This document shows positions 6,423 through 61,640 of a stretch of 64,000 bases of DNA, piece by piece (within the stretch, counting starts at the first letter, position 1; the number at the start of each line of letters is the position of its first letter). Under the pieces are notes generated by a model. That model had not been told where the DNA came from. It made no database searches and saw nothing but the letters and a program-made list of their open reading frames with translations. The stretch spans positions 372,001-436,000 of the forward strand of contig NIVC01000364.1 in the NCBI GenBank assembly GCA_002269645.1, written 5' to 3'. This DNA comes from Macrostomum lignano. Lineage: Eukaryota. The translations under genes and the position numbers were made by a program.

Positions 6423-23475
<17,053 letters not shown>

Positions 23476-29296: not shown

Positions 29297-30654
29297 ATGG
29301 AAATCGGTGTCCAGTCCATCAACGAGTTCGTCCGGTCCACCACGGCCCACGGATTCAACCGGGCCTACGAGAGCAAGTCGGTGCCGATCCGGTGCATGTG
29401 GCTGCTGTTCCTGCTGGCTGCCATGGGCGGCTTCGCCTACAACCTGGCCCTGCTCATCACCAACTACCTATCGACGCCGATCTCGGCAACCATCACGCCT
29501 GGCGCAATCCAGTTCCAGACGCCCGACATCACTGTCTGCTCCGTGGCGCCCGTTTCGTCAACCAATTTCTACGAAACTGTCACTAGGCGCCCGGATGTTT
29601 TTGCCCAGTTGTACGCCCAGGCCTCAGGTGTGCAGACCACCGTCTACAGCAAAGGACTGGCCTTGTCCTCCGACATTCTGCTGCAGGTAATACATATTCT
29701 TGTTACTGGTTAGATCTTCAGTGAGTTAACACCTCCATCAAACAGCAAATCCATTCAAGTCAGTCCTCAATCTACAATAAACGATTATTAGCTAATCATT
29801 ATTTATTCTAAACGCAGGTGTCACGCGACGTATTCGACCCCAACTTACTACTAAAGTACCTTGGTCACAAGCGGGAGTACTTTATTGTACGCTGCCGATA
29901 CAAGGGCGTCACGTGCAGTTATTCGGACTTTAGCGGCTTCTGGGACAGCAAGTACGGCAACTGTTTTAGATTTCAGCCGTCAGATCAGCTGTTGGATGCC
30001 ACAAAAGATATTGTCGAGTTTCAACTTGAGTTGGTGAGTAGTTTTTTTAGTGAGTAGTTCCTTTAGCTGAAGATGTGTTGAACCGCGTCTAGTGCATATA
30101 CTTCTCACGGTTCCGATTTTTGTATATCGGACTAGCACATGCGCCCCCTTTGGGGTTACAGTAAAGAGGACTATTTTCGGAAGAAAGGACAGCTCTCCGT
30201 TGATAATTAAGCACAGTGCGAGTAGTTTTTAACTATTACTTAATCGAACACTCGGCCTCCAGATCCTGTTCACGGACACGGCCCCAGTAGTGACCAACAT
30301 AAACAGCAACACAATCTACGGGATGCTAACTGCCGGCATCACATTCGAAGGCGAGTACGACGCGTCGAAATCCGGCGGAGCGATTCTGTTCTACGGCGAC
30401 AAAGACCACTATCCCAGGGACTTCATCAACCTGTCTCCCGGGGTGCAGTCCTACGTAGATTTCCAGATGGTGGAGCATCGGTGAGAAATTCCGGCTAGAT
30501 TTATTGATTGATGGGTCAATTGATTGATTGATTGATTGATTAATTGGTTGGTTGATTTATTGATTGATTGATTGACTTATTGATTAGTTGACTGGTTGAT
30601 TTGTTGATTGCTTGATCGATCGATTAATTGATTGGTTGATTGGTTGGTTGGTTA

Positions 30655-30694
<40 letters not shown>

Positions 30695-33587
30695 ATTGAT
30701 TAATTGATGGGTCGATGGGTCGATTGACGGATTGATTGATTTAAAAAAGTGATTGCTTATTTAAAGTGGACCGATTCCTTTTATGCACAGCTGAAACAAA
30801 AGAACGTTACACTCAATTTTCTTACGTAGAATCAAGAGACTGAATTTGTCTATGGGGAAAACCCATTTAGCGTTTTGAGTTTCCCCTCCAGCGTTTCCCC
30901 TCCGGACATTGCTCCTCTAAATGAAAATGGACATGAAAGTGAAACTGGCTGCTGTGTATTGAAAAAACTTGCTAGGGAGGGGGGCAGCGGAAGATGTGGC
31001 GACTGACACATTAGACACTTAATGACGCCACGAAGGCGGCCCATTTTATTCTTGTTTTCACAGACGCAGGGGAAACGCCGGAGGCAAACGCCGGAGGGGA
31101 AACGCCAGAGGGGGAAACGCTGGAGGGAAACGCCAGAGGAGAAACGCCGGGGGGAAACGCCGGAGGGGAAACGCCAGAGGGGAAACGCCGGAGGGGGAAA
31201 CGCTGGAGGGGAAACGCCGGAGGGGAAACGCCGGAGGAGGAAACGCTGGAGGGGAAACGCCGGAGGGGAAACGCCGGAGGGGAAACGCCGGAGGGGAAAC
31301 GCCGGAGGGGAAACGCCGGAGGGGAAACGCCGGAGGGGGAAGCGCTGGAGGGGAAACGCCGGGGGAAACGCCGGAGGGGGAAACGCCGGAGGGGAAACGC
31401 CGGAGGGGAAACGCCGGAGGGGAAACGCCGGAGGGGAAACGCCGGAGGGGAAAAACCAGAGGGGAAATGTCCGGTAGAATCCTTGCAGACTTTCACCTGA
31501 ACTTGACCGCTTCTGCATGATCTAGAAATAAAAAGCAAAAAAGCCTGAGGCCTGTGCGAAGTAAAAACAGAAGGCAGGTGAAAGTTGAGCCAAATTGCAG
31601 CGGGAGGGTTCTGAGCAGAACTGAATCGCTCAAGTCGGCATGCAGTTTGAGCAAATGCTATTATCGATCGATTAGCGCTAATTGGTTTCGTAGAAAAAGT
31701 CTTCCAACGAGATTTCTTCTTTGGTAACCAAAACAAATACTGCATTCCGCTAGTGTCTTCAAGCATCTTTGCAGTCGCTGTTCTCAGTGGTGAGCGGTAG
31801 AACACTGGATCTCTGTGTCTCTGTGTGGATCAAATTGATTATATTTCTCGTTGTCAAAGCGACGTCTGATTCAACTCTGAAAAAAAAGCGGAGCGGACAT
31901 AATTGACCCAGACTAATGAGCCAATTAGACAATTATTTTTTTTCTGTGGTGTCTTTTTGGCCAATTGTAAACAACGTTTTATCGACATTCAATGGAAAAT
32001 CAAACTTTTCTGCGCTTTTGCATAGAACGTTGTGGCAGGCGTTTTCATCCTGTCATGGGTTGAAATACGAGTATGCACTCCTCAATATTGAGCTGGGGAG
32101 AAACGTGTAAAGGCCGCGTGGACAACTGATGCAAAAGGACGATAGACTCGGTTTTCTTAGAAGTGAGCTGGAGGCTGGTAGAGAATGTTCATGTATTTTT
32201 CTCGAATCGCTAGTGAATTTAGTGTGCAGTTGTGTCGAGAACTCATAGCGCTGAATGGGGTTTTGCCATAGACAAAATCGGTCGAGAAAAATTCGATTTT
32301 ACTACAGTTGTCCAATGAGATCAAGGACTTCAATAAGTAATTACGATTTTAAAAATCAACCAACCAACCAATCAGACAATCAATCAGACAATCAATCAAT
32401 CAGACAATCAATCAGACAATCAATCAATCAGACAATCAATCAATCAGACAATCAATCAATCAGACAATCAATCAATCAGACAATCAATCAGACAATCAAT
32501 CAATCAGACAATCAATCAATCAGACAATCAATCAATCAGACAATCAATCAATCAGACAATCAATCAGACAATCAATCAATCAGACAATCAATCAGACAAT
32601 CAATCAGACAATCAATCAGACAATCAATCAGACAATCAATCAGACAATTAATCAATCAGACAATCAACCAACCAATCAATCAGACAATCAATCAGACAAT
32701 CAATCAGACAATCAATCAGACAATTAATCAGACAATCAATCAGACAATCAACCAACCAATCAATCAGACAATCAATCAATCAATTAATCAATCAATCAAT
32801 CAATTAATCAATCAATCAGACAATCAATTAATCAATTAATCAATCAGACAATCAATCAGACAATCAATCAGACAATCAATCAGACAATCAATCAGACAAT
32901 CAATCAGACAATCAATCAGACAATCAATCAGACAATCAATCAATCAATTAATCAATCAATCAATCAATTAATCAATCAATCAGACAATCAATTAATCAAT
33001 TAATCAATCAGACAATCAATCAGACAATCAATCAGACAATCAATCAGACAATCAATCAGACAATCAATCAGACAATCAATCAGACAATCAATCAGACAAT
33101 CAATCAGACAATCAATCAGACAATCAATCAGACAATCAATCAGACAATCAATCAATCAGACAATCAATCAATCAGACAATCAATCAGACAATCAATCAGA
33201 CAATCAATCAGACAATCAATCAGACAATCAATCAGACAATCAATCAGACAATCAATCAATCAGACAATCAATCAATCAGACAATCAATCAGACAATCAAT
33301 CAATCAGACAATCAACCAACCAATCAATCAGACAATCAATCAGACAATTAATCAGACAATCAATCAGACAATCAACCAACCAATCAATCAGACAATCAAT
33401 CAATCAATTAATCAATCAATCAATCAATTAATCAATCAATCAGACAATCAATTAATCAATCAATTAATCAATCAATTAATCAATCAATTAATCAATCAAT
33501 TAATCAATCAATTAATCAATCAATTAATCAATCAATTAATCAATCAATCAGACAATCAATCAATCAATCAACCAATCGATCGATCAG

Positions 33588-33622
<35 letters not shown>

Positions 33623-35111
33623 GACAATCAATCAACCAACCAACCAATCGAAAATCCTCCCAACCCACCAAAGCTACGTGAACCGGAACTCGAAGCCCTG
33701 CAGCAGCGCTAATGGCCACGTGTTCTACGAGGACTCCAGCGGCAGCCGAATCAGATTCAAGCGGAACCGCATCGACTGCCAATACCGGATGCTGCTTGAC
33801 AAGATTTTCGCCGACTGCAGCTGCTTCTCAACCCGCATGGCGCCACCGTATTTCACTGTCGCCGAGCAGTTTAACGTTAGCCGCTGCCAGTACCTGGACA
33901 GCGCCACGAACAGTTCCATCTTCATCGCCAAGCGGAACTGCGAGAAGCAACGAATCGAGACTAAGAGCACCTACTTCAACGACATCGTGTCCAGCTGCCT
34001 GCCGAACTGCATCGAACGAATCTACACTCCCATCATCTCCATGACCTCCTGGCCATTGAACAGCCTAGCAGTGAAATGCAAGGATACGGTGATGAACGAA
34101 ACCATCGACCGGCTGGTGGCCAACAATGTCACCGTGCCGGACACGTTCTACTACTTCCTGCGCAACCTCACCACAATTGCCGATGTGCAGCGCGAATTTT
34201 CAAGCAACTTTGCCCAAGTCAGCCTCGGCGCCTACACGGCCTTCAGCGAGCTGGTGAAGGAGACCGAGTCCTTCCAGATATTCGACCTGTTCTCCAGCAT
34301 CGGCGGCATTCTCGGCCTCTATCTGGGCATGTCGCTGCTCACCGTGTGCGAGCTGTGCGAGCTGTTCTTCGTAGTCATCTCCGAGCTGCAGACGGCCGCC
34401 AAAGGCTACAAGGACCGCAAAGAGTGGAAGGAGCAGCTGCGGCACAAACGCCAGGTGGCCATCCGAGCGCTGAGCCGCGTGCTGGCCGTCCAGGACCTCG
34501 GAGACGACGACCCGGAGAAGGTCAGCGGCTCGGACACCAGCAGCCTGGACACGGGGCGCTCCAGCCTGGACACCAGCCTGGCCGAGGAGATCCGGGCACC
34601 ACCGGCGAAGAAGAATCCTCCGGCGATGACGGCGACAGTGACGGCTGTGACAGCGCCGGCGTCGAAGCCGCAGTCTCAGGCCAGGTTCCCGTCAGTCAGC
34701 AGGCTGCAGATGTTCAGCAGGCAGCAGGCTGGAAGGAAACAGCAGCCGCCGCCGCCACCACCGCCGCCACCGCCAAAGGCGAAGCCGCCGCCGCCACCAC
34801 CGCCGCCACCGCCAAAGGCGAAGCCGCCGTCGCAGCAGCAGCAGCAGGCGACGAAGCCACGCGTCACCCGCGTGACCCCGCCATGCCCGGGCAGCCGGTG
34901 TACAAGGAGTGACGGGTGCACCGCGGGAGCAACTGTTGGAGTGAAGACGTGTAACGTCAAACTGGAACATGCTAGGGCCTTCAACTTTTTTGGGGAAATT
35001 CTGGGGAAATCCAGTTATCCATTTTTGCATCAGGCCTTCAAGTTCGAGTCCTTTTTCAATATCTACACAATCTCTCCACACATCTTTCTCTCGTCCTCTC
35101 ACTATCCCTGA
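29297..35111 (+). CDS. DEG/ENaC (amiloride-sensitive sodium channel superfamily) subunit
   Basis: Exons 29297-29686, 29818-30033, 30263-30480, 33674-35111, with consistent phases 0/0/2. Pre-TM1 HG motif (STTAHG), TM1, PDITVC, YGNCF, Cys-rich thumb and TM2 FSSIGGILGLYLGMSLLTVCELCE. The 3' end beyond about 34900 is uncertain (read-through to the ORF stop versus a further splice). Confidence 0.9.
30500..30742. repeat. (TTGA)n-type tetranucleotide array at the 5' end of DEG/ENaC intron 3
   Basis: Degenerate ttga/ttgg/gatc repeats starting about 20 nt after the donor at 30481. Confidence 0.9.
31065..31465. repeat. 14-bp GC-rich tandem repeat (cggaggggaaacgc)
   Basis: Tandem copies. Explains ORFs 30850-31805. 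Confidence 0.9.
32355..33650. repeat. (TCAA)n/(ATCAGACA) array at the 3' end of DEG/ENaC intron 3
   Basis: About 1.3 kb of atca-type repeats ending about 23 nt before the acceptor at 33673. Confidence 0.95.
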
Positions 35112-35600: not shown

Positions 35601-36481
35601 TCTTTAGTCCGACACGGGTCTCTATTTTTTAAACTGTTTTGACAAACTTTCCTATTTTAAAATTCATGTACATTTTAGAATTTGATACCTACTCGATTTC
35701 GAACTGTAATTTTGCACTACCCTCTGCTAACTCTGATTACACAAGCAACCAATGGCAGCACGGTGAGCACAAAGCTTTGAGAACACAGACACAAATACCA
35801 CATGCAAAAGCATCTATAAACGCGAATATTTAAACCACAACGATTTTTAAAAAAATGCAAACTCTGAATGAATGTGACAGTACCGTATTTCTTACTACGC
35901 AAGCAGACAGATTTTAGCAAGTTGTTCCATTCTCAAAATAAACAACAGATTTTACAATTGGTTTGCCATTGGTGCATTCTGAAAACATGCATTGGCTACT
36001 TTTCGCCAAACGGGGGACAAGGGGGGGGGCATGTCCTACCCAAATACAGTTACGGGTAACATGCTACAAAGTGCCCCAACCAAGACAATTGAGGTAGCAG
36101 GAAGACTCATTTTTCTTAGAAATGAGCGGGAGGCTAGTGAGGAACATGCGCATGCATTTGTCTAATCGCTAGTGCCCATAGCTCTGAATAGGGGGTTTTG
36201 CCATAGACAGATTCAGACAAGAAAAATCCAATTCATTACCGAGATCCAGTTCATTTCGAAGAAATTCGATCGAGTGTAGCGCACCTTTACTTCAGGTGAT
36301 CACGCAAAAAATTACCAACGCGCCTCTATCAAAAAAGTTATTTACACCTACCTGAATCTCTGGAATCTTACAGTGCTATAAGAGCAATTTGATGGTCAGA
36401 GAGTGCAATTGTGTTTGATGGCGGTAAAGCACTGTTATCATGTTTTAATTCACCGTGTTTGCAAAATATTCTGCTGAGCAT

Positions 36482-36535
36482 GGAGGGTTGTAGCCTAGTG
36501 GTTAGAGCTTCAGACTCACGACTTGAAGGTCGCAG
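36482..36535 (+). mobile_element. 5' head fragment of the CORE-like SINE
   Basis: ggagggttgtagcctagtggttagagcttcagactcacgacttgaaggtcg matches the 5' end of the copies at 37570-37895 and 61841-62156, then breaks off before the B box. Confidence 0.6.
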
Positions 36536-36629
36536 ACTCACGCAGACGGTGCAAGAGATGCTGACGGTCCAGGCACTCTACCGGCGGGGACAGACATGCG
36601 CTCGGTGTTTCGTCGACTGCCTGTCTGGC

Positions 36630-37012: not shown

Positions 37013-38493
37013 CTACTGCTGGTTAAGCGGATCAGCCCAGGTATCGTAGGCTGGCGCAGTGGAGCCGCTGGGCGCGGGGAACAGGCAGCAGGTGAGCAGA
37101 TTAGCCAGCAATCCCACGGCTAGCAGACAGCCGGGCAGCAGGAACACCAAAGCCAGCTGAGTGTACAACACGCTACCGTCAATCAGCAGCAGTAGCAGAA
37201 GCAGCAAGCTGGCCGCGGCAGCAACGCAGTAAATTGGCGTGAAGAACAGCGTGTAGAACTCCTGCCAGGGCCGGTCGTCCAGCAGGAACAGGTGCTGGTC
37301 GATGACGCCCTCGCCTGGCGCCCAGTGACGCTTGCCGCCTCTGGCGCTGCCTGCGGAGCTCAGCAGAATTTGATGCTGCGCCAGCTGCTGGTGCTGCTGA
37401 GCCTGCTGCTGCCCGGACCGAGCCAGGCCGCTGCTCCACTCGTCCGGCCCGACCGAGGTCTCGCTGCCGTCTGCGGTAGGCCGGTTCGGGTCTGCCCGTC
37501 TGGATGCTTTCTTGCCTGTCTTAACATCTGTTTGTCTTAGTGCTTGTCTATTCTAGTGCCTGTTCATCTTATTAATAATACAGTTTATTATAACGATTAA
37601 TTAAATCTGACCCAATTGGATCAGATATGAAACCGACAGCTCAGCCGCAGCTATTGCGCGACGCATCTGAAGGCTGCGTACGGCTGTTCAGTCCAAGGAC
37701 TGGGGGGGGGGGAGGTCGCCACACACACCCTCAATTACCCCAGCTAATGCTGACAACCATTTTACAGCTGGGTGAACTGAAGCAATGCAGAGTGTCATGC
37801 TCAAGGACACAAACTGTTCCGAGTGAGTCGAGAATCGAGCCTCCGACCTTTCAGTCGTGAGTCCGAAGCTCTGACCATTAGGCTACAACCCCTCCTGTCC
37901 GTCTAAGAGTACGTCTATCTTATTGTCTTAGTATCTGTCTGTCAATCTCTGTCAGTCTCACTGCCGAGTCTTGCCCAGACCCCCTATCACAGTTCCGGCC
38001 GTCGCCGCTCACCCAGCCTAGCAGTATTTCCCATATAATTGAGATCCTCGGCCTCCCAGTCCTCATCCGTGGTGGACACCGGCGAGTCAGACGGATAGCC
38101 GGCTATGAGCTTCTGATTGGCCCGCCGGAACATCCTGGGATGCATGCCGCTCTGCCGAGTCGTGCTGCTCCCTCTGCCATAGGCGCCGCCGCCGCCGCCA
38201 CCGCCACCGCCGCTGCCACCGCCGCCACCGCCGCCGCCACCACCGCCGCCACTGATGCCGCCGACACCACCGCCGCCACCGCCCTCTCCGCCTCCGGCAC
38301 CTCCAGCCGTGCCACCAGCCCCGGCGCCATTGTTAGCACCTGGGCTGGCAGAGTTCGGGTTTGCAACGCCTGCAGCGCCACCGCTGACGCCGCCAGCCCC
38401 TGCGGATCCTCCGGCCGCCGCCGCTGCTGATGCTGTGTTTCCCGCCTGTTTGTAACGCCGCAAAGCTTCGCTAGGTTTAGTTGCCGGTCGCAT
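37013..38493 (-). CDS. Uncharacterised Gly-rich protein with two C-terminal hydrophobic segments (about 312 aa)
   Basis: Exon 38493-38013 (ATG, poly-Gly, STTDEDWEAED, donor G|gtgagc) joins in phase 1 to exon 37470-37013 (ccgcag acceptor; Q-rich, then FYTLFFTPIYCVAAAASLLLLLLLLIDGSVLYTQLALVFLLPGCLLAVGLLANLLTCCLF). GC-rich coding-like composition. No family recognised. Confidence 0.65.
37570..37895 (-). mobile_element. tRNA-derived SINE with CORE-like central domain, in the intron of the Gly-rich gene
   Basis: The reverse complement aligns along its length with 61841-62156: A/B boxes, gtgtccttgagca...cttcagttcacccagctgtaaaatg and the shared 3' body. Confidence 0.8.
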
Positions 38494-41454: not shown

Positions 41455-53610
<12,156 letters not shown>

Positions 53611-56600
53611 GAATTCTTTTTAATCAAAGAAACAGTTTTGTAAAAAGCAGGATTTTTTCAATTCTTTATAACCTTTAGACTATAAAATAATTAAATAAAA
53701 TAAGATACGCGTGAAAATCTTAAATCAGTTCAAGTCTGTCGAACATTAATTAGGTCCGAGCTATATATCTATATATATATATATAAATATCGATAATAAT
53801 CACGTGAATATCCACGATGTTTAAAATGTTTTTGTTGTATTCATCGCCCTGTCATTTGTTTATTAATGGACATCCCTAGCAAATAAAAAAACAATTTTTC
53901 TTTTTAAGCTTTAGAAAGATACAGTACGAAATCTGCAGATATAAATTTTGCAGATAAATTTGATATAATTTTTGTTCGTTAGCTTGTCCGTAATATAAAA
54001 TATATTACCTTTAAAGAACTAAAGTATTGAGTGACGATTGACTATTCTGTTCTGTCGTGAAATTAAATTATGTTTTATCTATATCTTGTTGTTCTTTGAC
54101 TTGTAAATGAGTACAGGTACACAGTGTGTACTATATATACAAGTATATATTCGAGAATATACTAGTATATTATTAATATACAAAGTAATGTATTTTTATG
54201 TCCACGTATTTGCCATTTATCATTTCAATTACACATTCCAATCAATCCAATGCAGACTTCAAAATACACCTTAATTATTCTAATTAGAATAAAGCGTACA
54301 ACTCGTACTGACAACGACAAAAATATATGCAAAATATATATTTCATGCATATTTAAATTCACTTATTATTTACACTTGTTTTCTAAATAGTCCTCTATTA
54401 TTATTTCACAAGAATATACATGTATAGCTCCTTCAAGCTCCTTCAAGCTCCTTCAAATTTTAAATTTATGCGAATTATACATGAGCATATCGATTCCAGG
54501 AAGTACATGTACATTAAGATATACACATACCTACGCTTGTACTCATGCAAAGCATGCAATTAAGTGTATATGTATGTTTGTCGCTACAGAGATATTGCAT
54601 TTTAACCATATCTCGGAGTCGGGTTCCGTCCGACCTTGCGTCGTTCCATATCCCTATCCGACACGTGGACAAAAGTTATGCCCAGCACTCACTTGCAGGA
54701 AAAATCTGTTTGGCACTGTAAGTCACTTTTGTCTACTTCCCCTAACATTTATTCAGTAAAGTAAATTTTTGGTAAAAACACATCCATGCTTGTACATGCG
54801 GCAGGAAGAGTTCATCTGATCTGATGGAACATTTCTCTGCTGTCAAAAGTACACCGTGACCCGGAAAATTAATTGATGTTTTAAATATTAATCAACATTA
54901 AAATGTAAATCATGCTCTAAACTAATCGTGAACTCATGCAACCTTTTTGCCAAGAATATTAATAAAATCAAAGTCGTTTAAAGGAATGCTACGCTTTATT
55001 CATGTAGTGAGACAGCAAAAATATGATTTTATTCATCAGCAACGACCCAAACGGCGCCGGAACAACACAATTCAATTAGCATTGAAATTGAAATTAAAAA
55101 CAAAAAGTAAAACTGTCAAAATCTTCAATCATATTAATATAGTTTTGGGTAACCATATTTAACATATCGCGCACATGACGTGAACACGAAGGGAGCGATG
55201 GATTTATAATGAATACACAATTGCCACACTGAGAAGCAGCGAGACGAAAGGGTGAGTAAAATTAACAAAAACAGAAGCTGACGTTATGATCAAGCAGGAA
55301 ACCGAGCTAACGAAGAACTAATAGAGGTAAAAGAATTTGAGATGTAAGTTCATAAAGCATATGCCGAAATGTTAGTCAGAAAAAATGTTGAAAAAAGAAA
55401 AAAAATTTACACTTTATACTATTGCAGAACAACATTTATATTTGAAAAAAGTATCAATTCGCAGATCGCAGTCGACAATTTTAACTGCAGGTAATAATTA
55501 TCACACAAAACTGTGTTGTGTATGCACAAAAGGATAACAAAAACAAACAGATTGGTTATTCGTGACAACAATGCACTCTGCCCAGCATAAGCCGGCCATT
55601 TCAGACTAAATCGCACATTTTAAATAATAATAAGTTTATAAAGCAGCATTAATTGTGACTTTAATCATCCGTGTCATAAATCCATATCTGCAGGATTAAA
55701 ACAATGAAAAGTGTTATCATAATAATAAAAGCACTGGATTGTGTGTCAACTGAGGTGAGAACAGTGAAATAGGAATTCGGATTATCTGTAATCGCGTCTT
55801 AATCAAAGATTTCACACGTTTTATTAGCTAAACATTGGACGAAAACAAAATGGAGAACAATTTAAATATGAAGCACAAGAATGACAATGGATGGATAAGC
55901 GTATACCTCCGACTGCTGGCTTATTTAAAGGCCCGATATTGCTTCGAATTGGTTAAGAGACAGCAAGTTTTTATTTTTATCACTACCCAGCTAAATTGAT
56001 GTCTTAATTACTTCCCTTTTCTTAAAAAGTTATTTAAAACTAGCCATGGTGTTTTGCTTCTATTAAAAATACTCTTGGAAGCTGGAAAATGTGCAAAATT
56101 CAAGCAAAACTGCGGCATTGCCTTCTTTACCGGAATAGTTTTTCAAACCAATTTTCTCTTTCGAAATTTTTCTATGGCAAAACCTACTCAATCCAACTGC
56201 TTCTGCAACATATATTTATGTAGCGTTTCTAATAATTTCGAGTTGGGGTGCGGGCACCATGGCGCAACACCTTTCGGCGACATCGGGCCCACAACCTGCG
56301 CGGACGGCAATTCTGGCCAATGCTGACTCCTGTCCTGAGCGCATACAACTTCTTGGATCTTGTTTCTAGATTAGAAACAACCAGAAATTGCAGTCGCTTT
56401 GCTAAAGACACCACGTTTAGAATAACTTTTAAAATAACTTAAGTCTAAGTCTCGTTTCTGGGCAAAATTTTATTTAAAATCCCTAGCGAGGACGCTGACA
56501 ACTTAAACCTGTGACGGGTCAGTGAAGTTAAGAAACAATCGATTAATTGAGAATGAAAATTTAAGCTGACTAAAATTGAACTTTGTTACAATCAGTGCTA

Positions 56601-57228: not shown

Positions 57229-60200
57229 TCAGAGCCCCCGAGCCTGCAACAGCCGGTCGAGTTTCTCCTCGATGCGCTGCAAGTGAGCGTCAGTCTCCTT
57301 GGCCTTGGCCTGCACGGACGCCAGGCCAGTCAGCATGAAGCCCTGGTTGCGGTACATCTCCGTCAGGCTCACCGAACTGTCCGCCAGCCGTTTCTGATCG
57401 TTGCGTAGCTCCCGGATGCGGTGGATGGAGTGCAGCAGCCGACGCTGGTGCTTCAGCGTCTTAGTCGCATTGCCAGCCCGCTTGTACTTGTAGGACAGCC
57501 AGCCCTCCTTCAGGATGTTCGCGGCCGCGTGTTTCACCTGCTTGTCCAGCTCGATATCAATCACAAAATTGTGCACGTACTTCTCGGCTCTGGACAGTTC
57601 CAGCTTTCTGGCCAGTACGGCCACTACAAGAGCCGTCACACCTGTGCCGAACAGTCCTGGGAGGCGGGCAAGGGGGGTTTTATAATTAATGAGCTGCTGG
57701 ACGCTGAGGGGTGCTTCACGTCTTAAATTACTTCTCTATTGTTTCGATTTGCTTGCCTTACTCCGGTAACTCCTGATTCATCTATTCTATACTCTCCCTC
57801 TCCTACCTCCCTCTCCTACCCTCCCTCTCCTACCCTCCCTCTCCTACCCTCCCTCTCCTACCCTCCGTCTCCTTCCCTCTCTCTCCTACCCTCTCTCTCC
57901 TACCCTCTCTCTCCTACCCTCTCTCTCCTACCCTCTCTCTCCTACCCTCTCTCTCCTACCCTCTCTCTCCTACCCTCTCTCTCCTACCCTCCTTCCCTCC
58001 CCTACCTTCCCTCCCCTACCTTCCCTCCCCTACCTTCCCTCCCCTACCTTCCCTCCCCTACCTTCAACCCCCTACCCTCCCTCTCCTACCCTCCCTCTTT
58101 CCTCTCTCTCCTCTCTCCTCTTTCTCCATACGTACAGCATAAAAATAACATACAAAAAGAGAGGCTTAAGCAGTTGAGCAACCATGCAGAGAGTCAGTCC
58201 TTAGTTACCATTCTCTCCATTCGAACACTTAGCTTACTACTGAGCAAAGTGCAGACTCAGAGATGCGGCTTAACAGCGAAATCCACGTAATTATTTTATA
58301 AAAAGAGAGATTGCCCCAAAGCAACAGTTACTTATAGATTAACACCAACCAAGGATTAGTAGAGTTAATCCTGCTCGAAGACTACAGTTGCACTGCCAAA
58401 GCCCATCATAGGCAAAGCCAATAGTCGTGCAGATGGACTTTGAAGCTTTAAAGCTTTGAAGGAATTGACTGAATATATTTATTTATTCAGTATATCTATC
58501 TCTTTAGCCGGTCTGGGACCTTCTGTCGGGCCGGCCCAAACCTGCCCTACAGCAAGAATAAAAATACGGATGAAAAATAGCACAAAATAGACAGAGAGAC
58601 AGATGGCACCCACCTCCAGTGCAGTGTAGCTACAGTATGCGGTTAGAAAATTGAGACGGCCAAACTAAATTGATGAGTAATTGAAGTCGGGGCCCTTAAT
58701 CCGCATCTAACTACTCATAATCCGCAGAACTAACTGACTGACTGACTGACCGCGGCAGGGCCTCTCAGTTCTGGTATTCACCTTTAGCCAGTGAGAGAGT
58801 GGGAAAACTCATAATGGTAACTGGTCTCCAGAGACAGCCCGCTCACCCAGACGGGCAAGCCCTCAGCAAACGCCAAAAATCGATTTTCATGTCTTGCATA
58901 GATAAATAAATTTCTGTCAGACGTATCATTGAGTTGGGATTCGACCCACACAACCCCACAGGCTAGGGAAATATGAGAATTCTGGGAAGATGTGTGCCGG
59001 GTTTCTTCTAAATTAAGAATACACACACTGAAGCTAGAAGCTAGAATGCCATATAAGTTCGCTTTGGCCTCCCTCCTTCAAAGCGATCGAAGCCATTTTA
59101 TCGATTCGAATTCCGAAATTTGATACTTAACGATTTAAAAGTGCAAGAACGCTTTGGTTAATTTACGATGCAAGACTTAGCGCTGGCTTGTCGCAACTTT
59201 CTTAGTTATCTATTCAGTTTCTCTGCCCACATCTCTGTTTACTCTGTTTTCTCTCCCTCTGTCTACTTCAGTCTTTTCATGCTTTCCCCTCTCCCTCAGT
59301 GCCTTGTGATTGGCTCTTCAATCTCGCCTCTTTCCTCAGGCGCGCACTCCACGCCCTCATCTGTTTTCTCTGTTTACTCTGTCTTCTCCCCCTTTCAGTC
59401 TAGTTCAGTCTTGTTATCTCTCACCCTCGCTGCTTTCTGATTGGCTCTTTAATCTCGCCTCTTCCCTCAGTCGTGCATTCCACCAGCCCATTTGCATTCC
59501 ACCCCCAGCATTCCTTTTCTTATCTGCACTCAACCACCCAACGGCGGAGGACTAGTCAGGCATTCCACTACAGGAAAAATACGCGACTTGACCATGGGTC
59601 CACGTTAATATCTAATAATCTTTAATATTCTCTATTTTCTATAAATTAGATTTCTTGAGTCCACTAGTCGAGTCCACGGGAGCCATGACTAGTCGAGTCC
59701 ATGCCACCGTGGACCCATGGTCTAGTCGTGTATTTTTCCTGTAGTGGAATGCCCGCGCAAATGGGCTGACTCAACCCCCACTAATTGAATGTCTTGAAAA
59801 TAGACTCGTTCTAATTGCTTGAAAAACGCACCCAAATACAATGATCAAACGCCCCACTTACTGTTCTCAGTTTCAAGTAATTCACGGTAATCGTAAAATT
59901 CAATTTATTATCTTCTTTTTCTCTAGGGCATACAAAATCTCGAGTTTTGCCAATCCCGGGATTCTCGTTCCCATAATTAAAATGGTTTCTTATTTTTGGT
60001 GGAGTTTTGGTTTACGAAGCCATCTAAAATAGAACAGAATAAAAGATTTTGCAAACAAGAAACGGACAGTGAGCTCCGAATTGGAGTGTGATGTACGGGC
60101 TGGCGTAATGATAGTAGACGTGCTTTTTTACATGCCAGTATCAGCTCAGGAAAATCACACTTGATTGTGATGTAACATGGGGAATGATAGCTTACTGAGC

Positions 60201-61640
60201 TATGACCCGAGGTACTAATACCTGGGTATAAGGGGATCAGACCTCACCCTCCCAGGGGCACCCGCCCTAGATGGAGAATTGGTAGCTTGGGTTGTGGTCC
60301 GATAGCAAGGTCCCACTATTCTAATCCCAACTATACAGCCAAGGAGTTTTGAAGGTAGAGACTGCTTAAAGTAGTTCTACATTTTTACAGCTTAAATACC
60401 TTTACGACCTGCTAGCAGCTTCTGTTTTGTATCCCTGCAGCCCTATAGCCTTCTACTCATTAGCGTACATGCTTAAAGGATTAAGAAATCAAAGTAGGAC
60501 AACTGGGTTATGAGTTTCACCTGACAAGTATCTCAGCTGCAGATATTACTACTCGATAATGAATGATTGAATTATTGCAAAGCCGGATAGGGATCCCGAT
60601 GGTCAATCCCGGGATTTTCGAATCCCGGACAATTGTGATCCCAGGATTTATAGTTCTGGGATTTAGACCAAACGGATTAGACAGCTCAAGTCACCTGTCA
60701 GTACGGCGATGCCGCGGCCGCAGTAGGAGGCCGGCACGATGTCGCCGTAGCCGACCGTCAGGAAAGTGATGGCCGTCATCCACATGCTGTTGAGGAAGTT
60801 CCTGTGCTCAGGCCCGTGGTACATCTCGCAAGCGCGCACAGCCCAAGACGCCCAGATGAACAGGAACAGGGCCATCACGGTGAGCACGTACTCGGGATAC
60901 AGATTCATCAACGATTTGAATATGAACCGGAAGTTGAAGTGGATCCGGTTCAGAGCGCCCAGACTCTGCGAGGAGGCATCCTGGTACAGGCGGCTGTGCA
61001 GCATCATGACCCGGCAGACCAGGTAGAAGCGCAGGAACATCGGCAGGCTGAAGATCACATCTATTGGGATGGCCTGCATCAGCCTGACGCTGTTGGTGTT
61101 GTCGTACGCCAGCATCTGCACCATGTGCTGGCCGGGGATTGGGTGAATGGCGCAGACCAGCAGCTCCATGGCCAAATGGAAGCCCCTTGACAGGGTGATA
61201 GCCAAGCGCCAATCGTCCATCGAGTTGTCAATCATGAACACCTTGATGTCCAAGTAGTGATACCAGCTGATGAAGCCCAGTAATATGGCCGTGCTGACGC
61301 TGATGAGGCTCTTCATGACGATGGACCCGGCGCCAGCCTTGTTGAAGATCCCGGCGATGCAGAGCTCGGTCTCGATGATCATCATCACGATGCCCAGCAT
61401 CGCGAAGAACAAGCTCAAATCTGCGATCAGCTTCCGGCGAACAAAGAGCTCCTTGCGTCTGGCCAGCCTAGCGCCAACGTTCTCGTATTTGAAGGTCTTT
61501 GTTGGGCCAGACGAAGAGCCGTAGTTGCTGCCGCAACTGCCACCGACGCCGCCGCCGCCGCCGCCATTGGCTCGGCCGACGCCAACCAGCGGGATGGCCG
61601 GGTCTTCAATCATGGTGCTGCCGCTGCCCCGTCCGCTCAT
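57229..61640 (-). CDS. SK: Small-conductance Ca2+-activated K+ channel (SK/KCNN family), 457 aa
   Basis: Exons 61640-60695 and 57656-57229, phase 1, 1374 nt. Motifs: ENVGARLARRKELF, ELLVCAIHPIPG, PMFLRFYLVCRVMMLHS, pore TFLTVGYGDIVP, CaM-binding domain AEKYVHNF...KHAAANILKEGWL...HQRRLLHSIH and a C-terminal coiled coil. Confidence 0.95.
57790..58125. repeat. Pyrimidine-rich repeat (ctctctctcctacc / ttccctcccctacc) in the SK intron
   Basis: Tandem 14-bp-type units. Confidence 0.9.
59559..59753. mobile_element. 195-bp fold-back element (about 46-bp inverted arms) in the SK intron
   Basis: ggcattccactacaggaaaaatacgcgacttgaccatgggtccacg versus cgtggacccatggtctagtcgtgtatttttcctgtagtggaatgcc (2 mismatches). 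Internal ctagtcgagtcca direct repeats. No TSD seen. Confidence 0.7.

Follow-up and report, generated by a model that had tools for sequence, protein, structure and literature searches.

The stretch of DNA analysed here, referred to as the window, comprises 64,000 nucleotides (nt) of Macrostomum lignano (contig NIVC01000364.1 of assembly GCA_002269645.1, positions 372,001 to 436,000, forward strand). It contains a gene for a member of the DEG/ENaC channel family, and the third intron of this gene carries complementary tandem arrays, called arms below, close to both of its splice sites. The original prediction was that these arms pair in the RNA and take over the role of a weak polypyrimidine tract in splicing, or that they are the ends of a fold-back transposon now serving that role.

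The DEG/ENaC gene and its third intron

The DEG/ENaC gene lies on the plus strand within 29297-35111 and consists of four exons, separated by introns of 131, 229 and 3193 nt which all have GT..AG ends. The spliced product matched the Pfam family ASC (PF00858) with an E-value of 1.4e-50, covering profile positions 1-455 of 455 with residues 11-505 in a single stretch. FMRFamide-gated channels, ENaC and ASICs are the nearest solved relatives of the product, and FaNaC1 is the closest structure. The following parts were assigned:

29297-29686, plus strand: DEG/ENaC exon 1
29818-30033, plus strand: DEG/ENaC exon 2
30263-30480, plus strand: DEG/ENaC exon 3, ending in phase 2 (...VEH + CG) by translation and splice model
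30481-33673, plus strand: DEG/ENaC intron 3, 3193 nt, GT..AG
33674-35111, plus strand: DEG/ENaC exon 4, a large exon up to the end of the open frame, from the list of open reading frames (ORFs)

The reading frame is kept by the GT at 30481 and the AG at 33672-73. In a BLASTP comparison with the distant homologue P0002, the junction of exons 3 and 4 (VEHR/YVNRNSKPC) was aligned without gaps and the cysteines downstream of it were aligned as well. The FaNaC alignment showed small gaps close to this junction. Because the homologue alignments cross the exon 3/4 junction, the predicted borders of intron 3 at 30481 and 33673 are well supported by homology. A search of the protein collection for close orthologues of the gene returned only two distant proteins, with 21-24% identity. 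The gene was absent from the annotated M. lignano protein sets searched, though M. lignano proteins are in the collection. It looks like a real and constrained gene that has been left unannotated.

Tandem arrays were delimited by Tandem Repeats Finder (TRF). From donor to acceptor, intron 3 is made up as follows:

30481-30497, plus strand: 5' splice site GTGAGA with the 17-nt non-array flank, from the sequence
30498-30741, plus strand: left arm, a degenerate (GATT)n microsatellite of 244 nt (TRF period 4, unit census)
30742-30882, plus strand: left subterminal unique segment of the inverted repeat, including GTCTATGGGGAAAACCC at 30848
30879-30918, minus strand: about 2.5 units of a 14-mer, opposed to the internal minisatellite (blastn of the intron against the window), with a spacer between the two
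31068-31467, plus strand: internal minisatellite (AGGGGAAACGCCGG)n, 28.6 copies, 400 nt (TRF)
31468-32238, plus strand: non-coding unique interior (ORFs without Pfam match)
32239-32353, plus strand: right subterminal unique segment of the inverted repeat, including GGGTTTTGCCATAGAC ending at 32273
32354-33656, plus strand: right arm, an (AATC)n-derived array of about 1.3 kb, of which TRF delimited 32354-33634 (1281 nt)
33624-33673, plus strand: AG-free zone of 48 nt and the acceptor AG; the last upstream AG ends at 33623

The left arm starts at +18 from the donor and contains 61 units, 31 of them perfect, with 75% matches and no insertions or deletions. For the right arm the best TRF period was 12, with the unit AATCAATCAGAC present in about 104 copies, and degenerate CCAA units extend the array to about 33656. 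The distance from the end of the right arm to the acceptor is 39 nt by TRF and about 18 nt when the degenerate units are included. Each 12-mer unit has a CAG, and 71 CAG were counted in the right arm. The arms are very unequal, 244 nt on the left versus about 1300 nt on the right, and their complementarity is 76-79% in all in-phase registers. The (TTGA)n and (TCAA)n arms predicted for the donor and acceptor ends were thus recovered, as (GATT)n at +18 and a complementary array near the acceptor, but the right one is mainly a 12-mer higher-order repeat and not a plain (TCAA)n array. The rare variants predicted for both arms were also present, as the unit census gave 8 GGTT/CCAA units on the left and 15 on the right, and 2 GATC units on each side.

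Inverted homology was also observed next to the arrays. The segment 30742-30882 and the reverse complement of 32239-32353 were identical at 89 of 111 aligned positions (80%), with a score of 32 compared to -5.6 +/- 4.0 for shuffled sequences, about 9 standard deviations above. The array/unique junctions and the adjoining 115-140 nt are mutual inverted copies. The shorter pair GTCTATGGGGAAAACCC/GGGTTTTGCCATAGAC, which had been described as nested inside the arms at 30848 and 32273, was found at exactly these positions, but it is the best-kept 17-nt core of the subterminal homology and belongs to one long inverted repeat rather than forming a separate feature. Intron 3 has three nested inverted pairs, the arrays, the adjoining unique segments and the 14-mer units, and therefore one mutational origin is indicated.

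No other GATT/AATC arrays turned up, either in the window (64 kb) or in two other loci (46 kb together). These two SK-channel loci (L001 and L002), used as extra sequence for the array scan, share only exons with the window (76-85% identity) and are therefore paralogous. Because the arms are the only GATT/AATC arrays in the scanned loci and share flanking homology, they both stem from a single event, which could be a fold-back element or else a local inverted duplication; independent recruitment, like chance, fails to explain them. Tandem repeats make up 27% of the bases of the window, and orientation alone is a one-in-two matter, so that two unrelated microsatellites could have come to lie in opposite orientation by chance. 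This explanation is hardly credible, as the window and the two other loci hold no further array of this kind, and it is effectively refuted by the homology beyond the arrays, in the junctions and the adjacent 115-140 nt.

Non-redundant Macrostomum sequence totalling about 110 kb was searched for a repeat family. After the intron had been masked, sensitive blastn identified a partial copy 2.4 kb away:

36084-36233, plus strand: third, diverged partial copy of 32121-32298, 66% identical over 182 nt, direct relative to the right side

A first blastn had suggested a dispersed family of four copies, of which only the copy at 36084-36233 survived masking of the intron and a stricter E-value. The matches of 14237-14307 and 56152-56184 to the intron repeat are short and marginal. 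No ORF with a Pfam match was found in the interior of intron 3. Inspection by eye revealed no target-site duplication or terminal motifs at the outer borders of the arrays, where the ends are degenerate and a decayed duplication is possible.

A second genomic copy of the locus

A second copy of the gene was found on L003, the contig of the M. lignano protein P0123, which was matched via a small membrane-protein gene at 38493-37013 (minus strand):

L003 19439-14700, minus strand of L003: DEG/ENaC copy

L003 is syntenic with the window from 30.9 to 47.5 kb, with 89-98% nucleotide identity, non-coding DNA included, and is 97.5-100% identical to it over the DEG/ENaC gene. The window may represent a second copy or a haplotype that is nearly identical, and the published M. 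lignano assembly is redundant (PMC5730564). Exon identity between the copies is 99.2-100%, with 218 of 218 nt identical in exon 3 and 1023 of 1027 nt in exon 4, where the amino acids are unchanged; all 8 exon differences are synonymous. Introns 1 and 2 are about 97.7% identical and the unique interior of intron 3 (31468-32238) is 97.5% identical. Because all 8 exon differences are synonymous and the introns are still about 97.5-97.7% identical, the gene is judged to be under purifying selection in both copies, which split recently.

The exons, with synonymous changes only, contrast with the repeat, which alters its length and loses parts. The donor flank 30481-30497 is matched exactly in L003, and so is the acceptor flank 33635-33673 (39 of 39 nt). 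The left arm is identical at 243 of 244 positions, with an additional 24-nt insertion in L003. Next to it, L003 lacks about 140-155 nt, from about 30753-30756 to about 30897, and with them most of the left unique segment, including GTCTATGGGGAAAACCC. The right subterminal segment 32239-32353 is present with 96.5% identity. The right arm is 1281 nt long in the window versus about 720 nt in L003, a difference of about 560 nt, and intron 3 as a whole measures 3193 nt in the window versus 2429 nt in L003.

The unique parts of the inverted repeat have diverged from each other by about 20%, eight to nine times more than the roughly 2.3-2.5% found between the genomic copies. The inverted repeat is therefore old, and the deletion in L003 represents the derived state. 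Since the gene in L003 is intact with this deletion and a right arm of only about 720 nt, the inner inverted pair is dispensable and the length of the arms can vary freely. The comparison of the two copies demonstrated that the arrays evolve by slippage and that the gene stays intact despite large differences in the repeat.

A further difference between the copies was seen outside the gene. L003 12505-13063 holds about 560 nt, including a stretch resembling a short interspersed element (SINE) that matches 37596-37892 of the window, and only a few bases are found at the corresponding place in the window (about 36533-36540). This SINE-containing difference of about 560 nt is an insertion or a deletion between the copies. 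tRNA-like SINE heads were observed in the window at 36485-36539 and 37837-37891, in inverted orientation and 1.3 kb apart.

Predicted RNA pairing and splice-site signals

Cofolding of the two arms gave -244.7 kcal/mol, compared to -100.2 kcal/mol for the arms folded alone (-90.0 and -10.2), a net gain of about -145 kcal/mol. In the minimum-energy fold of the whole intron, 225 of the 244 left-arm bases were paired with the right arm, 75 pairs joined the two unique inverted segments, and the 14-mer units at 30879-30918 were paired with the 14-mer array. Inversion of the left arm in silico cost 234 kcal/mol. The outer end of the helix was placed at 30498:33621. It leaves 69 nt free in all, 17 nt next to the donor and 52 nt next to the acceptor, and the latter nearly coincide with the 48-nt AG-free zone. 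Pairing of the arms in the RNA is thus strongly predicted by the folding calculations, and we regard it as a by-product through which the insertion can be tolerated.

A rival explanation takes this pairing for a selected RNA bridge, in which the duplex of the arms joins donor and acceptor, replaces the weak polypyrimidine tract and is maintained for that reason. Several observations fit such a bridge. The left arm begins at +18 and the right arm stops 18-39 nt short of the acceptor, the predicted duplex is very stable, and the AG-free branch-point zone stays outside the helix. The two genomic copies have both retained the two arms, with splice-site flanks that are identical, and the divergence of the left arm and the 5' part of the intron is low. 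The acceptor was correctly predicted to be poor in U, with just 2 U among the 20 nt from -23 to -4.

The predicted distance between donor and acceptor does not distinguish intron 3 in the way expected of a bridge. The path from donor to acceptor was 41 steps with the real arms, compared to 10-14 steps in the control with the left arm inverted. It was likewise 10-14 steps in the other introns of at least 229 nt, and 79 steps in the 131-nt intron 1. Because of these values in the other introns and in the inverted-arm control, the closeness of the intron ends in the folds is judged to be generic, independent of the arms, and not to single out intron 3. Bridging of the ends in the predicted fold was rejected as evidence for a bridge on the same grounds.

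The shared rare variants were rejected as evidence of co-evolution by a unit-shuffle test. When the units of the left arm were shuffled, 496 of 500 shuffles fitted the right arm as well as or better than the real order, and no register was favoured. The variants GGTT, AATT and GATC, found in both arms, are each one transition away from GATT. The commonest variant of the right arm, AGAC (GTCT as reverse complement), makes up 22% of the units and has no partner in the left arm; conversely, the right arm offers no counterpart to the left-arm variants TATT, GATG, GGTC and GACT. In the unit census and in the register and shuffle tests there was no sign of compensatory evolution between the arms.

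The weak polypyrimidine tract is also found where no arms are present. Pyrimidines occupy 12 of the 20 positions from -23 to -4 in intron 3, and the same number in introns 1 and 2 of the DEG/ENaC gene. Among the seven confirmed introns, U was counted at 3 of 20 positions in the introns of the SK-channel gene and of the small membrane-protein gene (TM gene), and at 5-11 of 20 in the others. The SK intron, without arms, combines its 3 U with a C-rich tract. The TM-gene intron at 37516-38012 (minus strand), also without arms, has a purine-rich acceptor region, CTAAGACAAACAGATGTTAAGACAG, with 3 U and only 5 pyrimidines in 20. In this sample of seven introns the argument from the weak tract therefore seems to fail, and polypyrimidine tracts may be weak in general in M. 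lignano. The AG-free zone is 48 nt long in intron 3 versus 18-35 nt in four other introns. CAG occurs in each 12-mer unit upstream of this zone, with a total of 71, and the branch point is therefore inferred to be located within 33624-33673, among the final array units and in the C-rich flank.

Arrays close to a donor are not peculiar to intron 3. Two introns of the Kv-channel gene in the window have arrays about equally near their donors, and neither of these arrays has a complementary partner:

16455-17302, plus strand: Kv-channel intron A, 89% of which is a 40-mer minisatellite (16472-17225) starting 17 nt after the donor
17542-18224, plus strand: Kv-channel intron B, 78% of which is a different 40-mer minisatellite (17581-18114) starting 39 nt after the donor

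The paired arrangement was present in one of the seven confirmed introns, and no other inverted pair of arrays was found in the window. The bridge is also opposed by the roughly twofold difference in arm length and the loss of the inner segment in L003, where the gene is still intact, and by the dimensions of the intron (3.2 kb in total, 244 and 1300 nt in the arms), which are unlike those of the short, mostly double-stranded introns of teleosts. Taken together, the arguments for an RNA bridge replacing U2AF do not hold up. The reading of intron 3 as a structured intron is, as judged from the folds, only physically plausible, and that the arms are a bridge maintained by selection is considered unlikely. 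A broader proposal is that complementary microsatellite arms serve Macrostomum, with its genome unusually rich in simple and tandem repeats, as a general splicing aid for introns bloated by arrays. Intron 3 would then be one member of the class, a tetranucleotide counterpart, in an invertebrate, of the teleost (AC)m-(GT)n introns; this proposal appears distinctly improbable.

Origin of the repeat and comparison with known systems

The explanation we favour is that intron 3 contains an old and tolerated inverted repeat of the fold-back type, which has a single mutational origin and is neutral; we regard this as probable, with appreciable room for doubt. The inverted repeat would have entered or arisen in an otherwise short intron, and only about 56 nt of intron 3 lie beyond the outer ends of the TRF-defined arrays. 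The corresponding non-array remainder is 94 and 149 nt in the two Kv introns, and the array-free introns, of 131 and 229 nt, are of about this size; a small intron plus a repeat is the general local pattern. In published data more than half of the M. lignano genome is repetitive, simple and tandem repeats account for 15%, and the mean intron length is 1.1-1.4 kb (PMC5730564).

The 5' splice-site region and the branch-point zone would have confined any insertion to the stretch between them. If only that stretch accepts an insertion, the ends of the repeat would necessarily abut both splice sites. The arrays would then have drifted by slippage, with decay of the left arm and re-amplification of the right arm as a 12-mer. 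In the pre-mRNA the arms would zip into a long imperfect duplex with 17 nt on the donor side and about 52 nt on the acceptor side left free, and the spliceosome would effectively meet a short intron with a large closed hairpin. According to this model, the duplex probably makes the 3.1-kb insertion harmless and is not a selected substitute for a polypyrimidine tract or for U2AF.

Several points weigh against the favoured explanation. The repeat has no target-site duplication and no clean termini, and the sole further partial copy in about 110 kb lies nearby. The inverted-repeat structure expected of a fold-back transposon was confirmed, but its mobility as a transposon and the splicing role proposed for its ends are hypothetical. 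The inferred ancestral intron, about 56-69 nt, would be shorter than the smallest confirmed intron of the window (131 nt), and the empty site is hypothetical. A branch-point zone that stays unpaired next to the outer end of the helix would also be expected of a selected bridge, and it fits the rule that insertions are tolerated only upstream of the branch point and beyond the 5' splice-site region as well. Finally, the 5' 590 nt of intron 3 (30481-31067) differ between the two genomic copies at 2 of 431 positions (0.46%), compared to 31 of 1230 (2.5%) elsewhere in the introns (p=0.008), and are thereby as alike as the exons; taken by itself, the left arm differs at 1 of 244 positions (p=0.05). 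This low divergence could hint at constraint, and is possibly the result of a gene-conversion tract or of alignment bias in the repeat.

An origin similar to that of introners was also considered. A fold-back element would then have been inserted into an exon and would have created the intron, with splice sites supplied by the element or co-opted. The repeat does fill all but about 56 nt of the intron, its inverted ends adjoin both splice sites, and fungal introns with near-terminal inverted repeats are described as spreading as mobile units. The exon borders, however, show no direct repeat or target-site duplication, and flanks of 17 nt and about 20-39 nt lie outside the repeat. No similar element was found in other introns of the 110 kb examined, and the inverted repeat is old and decayed, in contrast to introners, which are typically numerous and alike. 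Such an origin is considered very improbable.

The arrays elsewhere in the window are of several kinds. The motif GTCTATG(G/A) recurs in the units of the arrays at 495-1364, 14371-14667 and 17581-18114, which are unlike in other respects, and in the core of the inverted repeat at 30848/32273. The 78-mer unit of the array at 14371-14667 is a palindrome, GTCTATGGTCAAAACCCC/GGGGTTAGGGCCACAGAC, resembling the two intron cores joined head to head. A near-perfect (CTAA)92 array with 99% matches is located at 42094-42462, inside the range of a gene for a transporter of the SLC6 (SNF) family that was called from L003. A 23-mer array occurs twice in direct orientation (45214-45864 and 48941-49535) and flanks a 1.4-kb array of a 47-mer (46620-48050); this composite array lies within the SLC6 transporter gene region and is without complementarity. 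Palindromic units at 21995-22356, with 65-nt arms which are 91% complementary and 232 nt apart, look like miniature inverted-repeat elements. A similar appearance is shown by 59559-59753 in the SK-channel intron, with 46-nt arms at 96% and 103 nt apart.

Two observations concern the coding parts of the neighbouring channel genes. The protein encoded by the SK-channel exon 60663-61640 (minus strand) is 90-94% identical to M. lignano entries. The Rfam family K_chan_RES (potassium-channel RNA editing signal) was matched at 18185-18301 (plus strand) with 66.4 bits, compared to a gathering score of 51. This match overlies the exon for Kv S6, which starts at 18225, and its first 40 nt belong to the intron upstream. 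Folding of the stretch is no better than that of shuffled sequences (z=-0.63), and the match may mostly reflect the conserved S6 coding sequence.

Had the arms been selected as a splicing device, the known range of structure-assisted splicing by complementary simple repeats would grow to include a flatworm besides fish, and tetranucleotide besides dinucleotide repeats. This would suggest that repeat-rich genomes repeatedly evolve splicing by complementary repeats. Under the fold-back explanation preferred here, intron 3 clearly illustrates how a constrained gene can house a large fold-back repeat in a small intron. The locus is a useful natural test substrate, as transgenesis is possible in M. 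lignano (PMC5730564).

The introns most similar in layout to the proposed bridge are the (AC)m-(GT)n introns of teleosts and lamprey, in which complementary repeat hexamers lie no more than 40 nt from either splice site (Lin et al. 2016, Genome Res 26:12, PMC4691745). In these introns the repeats co-occur genome-wide, across introns and not across exons, and a polypyrimidine tract is frequently lacking; the introns are compact, narrow in their range of lengths and mostly double-stranded, and their splicing needs pairing and not U2AF2. The fish exemplar has 170 nt with more than 75% of the positions paired (PMC4691745). Intron 3 resembles this class in that its arrays lie within 40 nt of both splice sites, its predicted hairpin bridges the intron and its acceptor has few U. 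Its motif is GATT/AATC, so the likeness is one of analogy and not of identity. In contrast to the fish introns, the repeat unit is a tetranucleotide, with a 12-mer on one side, and the arms would derive from a single inverted duplication, not from repeats that expanded independently. With 3193 and 2429 nt in the two copies and an interior of 1.6 kb outside the arms, intron 3 exceeds the compact size of the class, and it is a single case, known here from its sequence alone. Structured introns with tetranucleotide repeats, or from invertebrates, were sought in the literature, and nothing relevant came up.

Inverted repeat pairs in long introns, such as inverted Alu elements in human genes, form intronic double-stranded RNA as a by-product, and the effect on splicing of inverted pairs in one transcript is usually neutral or incidental. 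Intron 3 likewise has two inverted copies of a repeat which are present in one transcript and predicted to pair. Unlike Alu pairs, these copies share one intron, adjoin its own splice sites and are made of microsatellite. Foldback (FB-type) elements have long inverted terminal repeats that are built of short tandem repeats. The long and unequal inverted arms of intron 3, made of degenerate short tandem repeats, are of the same kind, and so is its non-coding interior with further nested inverted repeats. The repeat differs from FB-type elements in having no target-site duplication or defined termini, with one diverged fragment 2.4 kb away.

The introners and internally symmetrical introns of Hypoxylaceae fungi (PMC8469720) have in common with intron 3 that the intron is nearly co-extensive with an inverted-ended repeat able to join donor and acceptor. 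The fungal introns are reported to occur in families of many similar copies at new positions, unlike intron 3, which is one old copy at a position that need not be new. A fold-back repeat within an intron is thus an already known kind of structure, and intron 3 is a new example of it in a flatworm ion-channel gene rather than a new mechanism.

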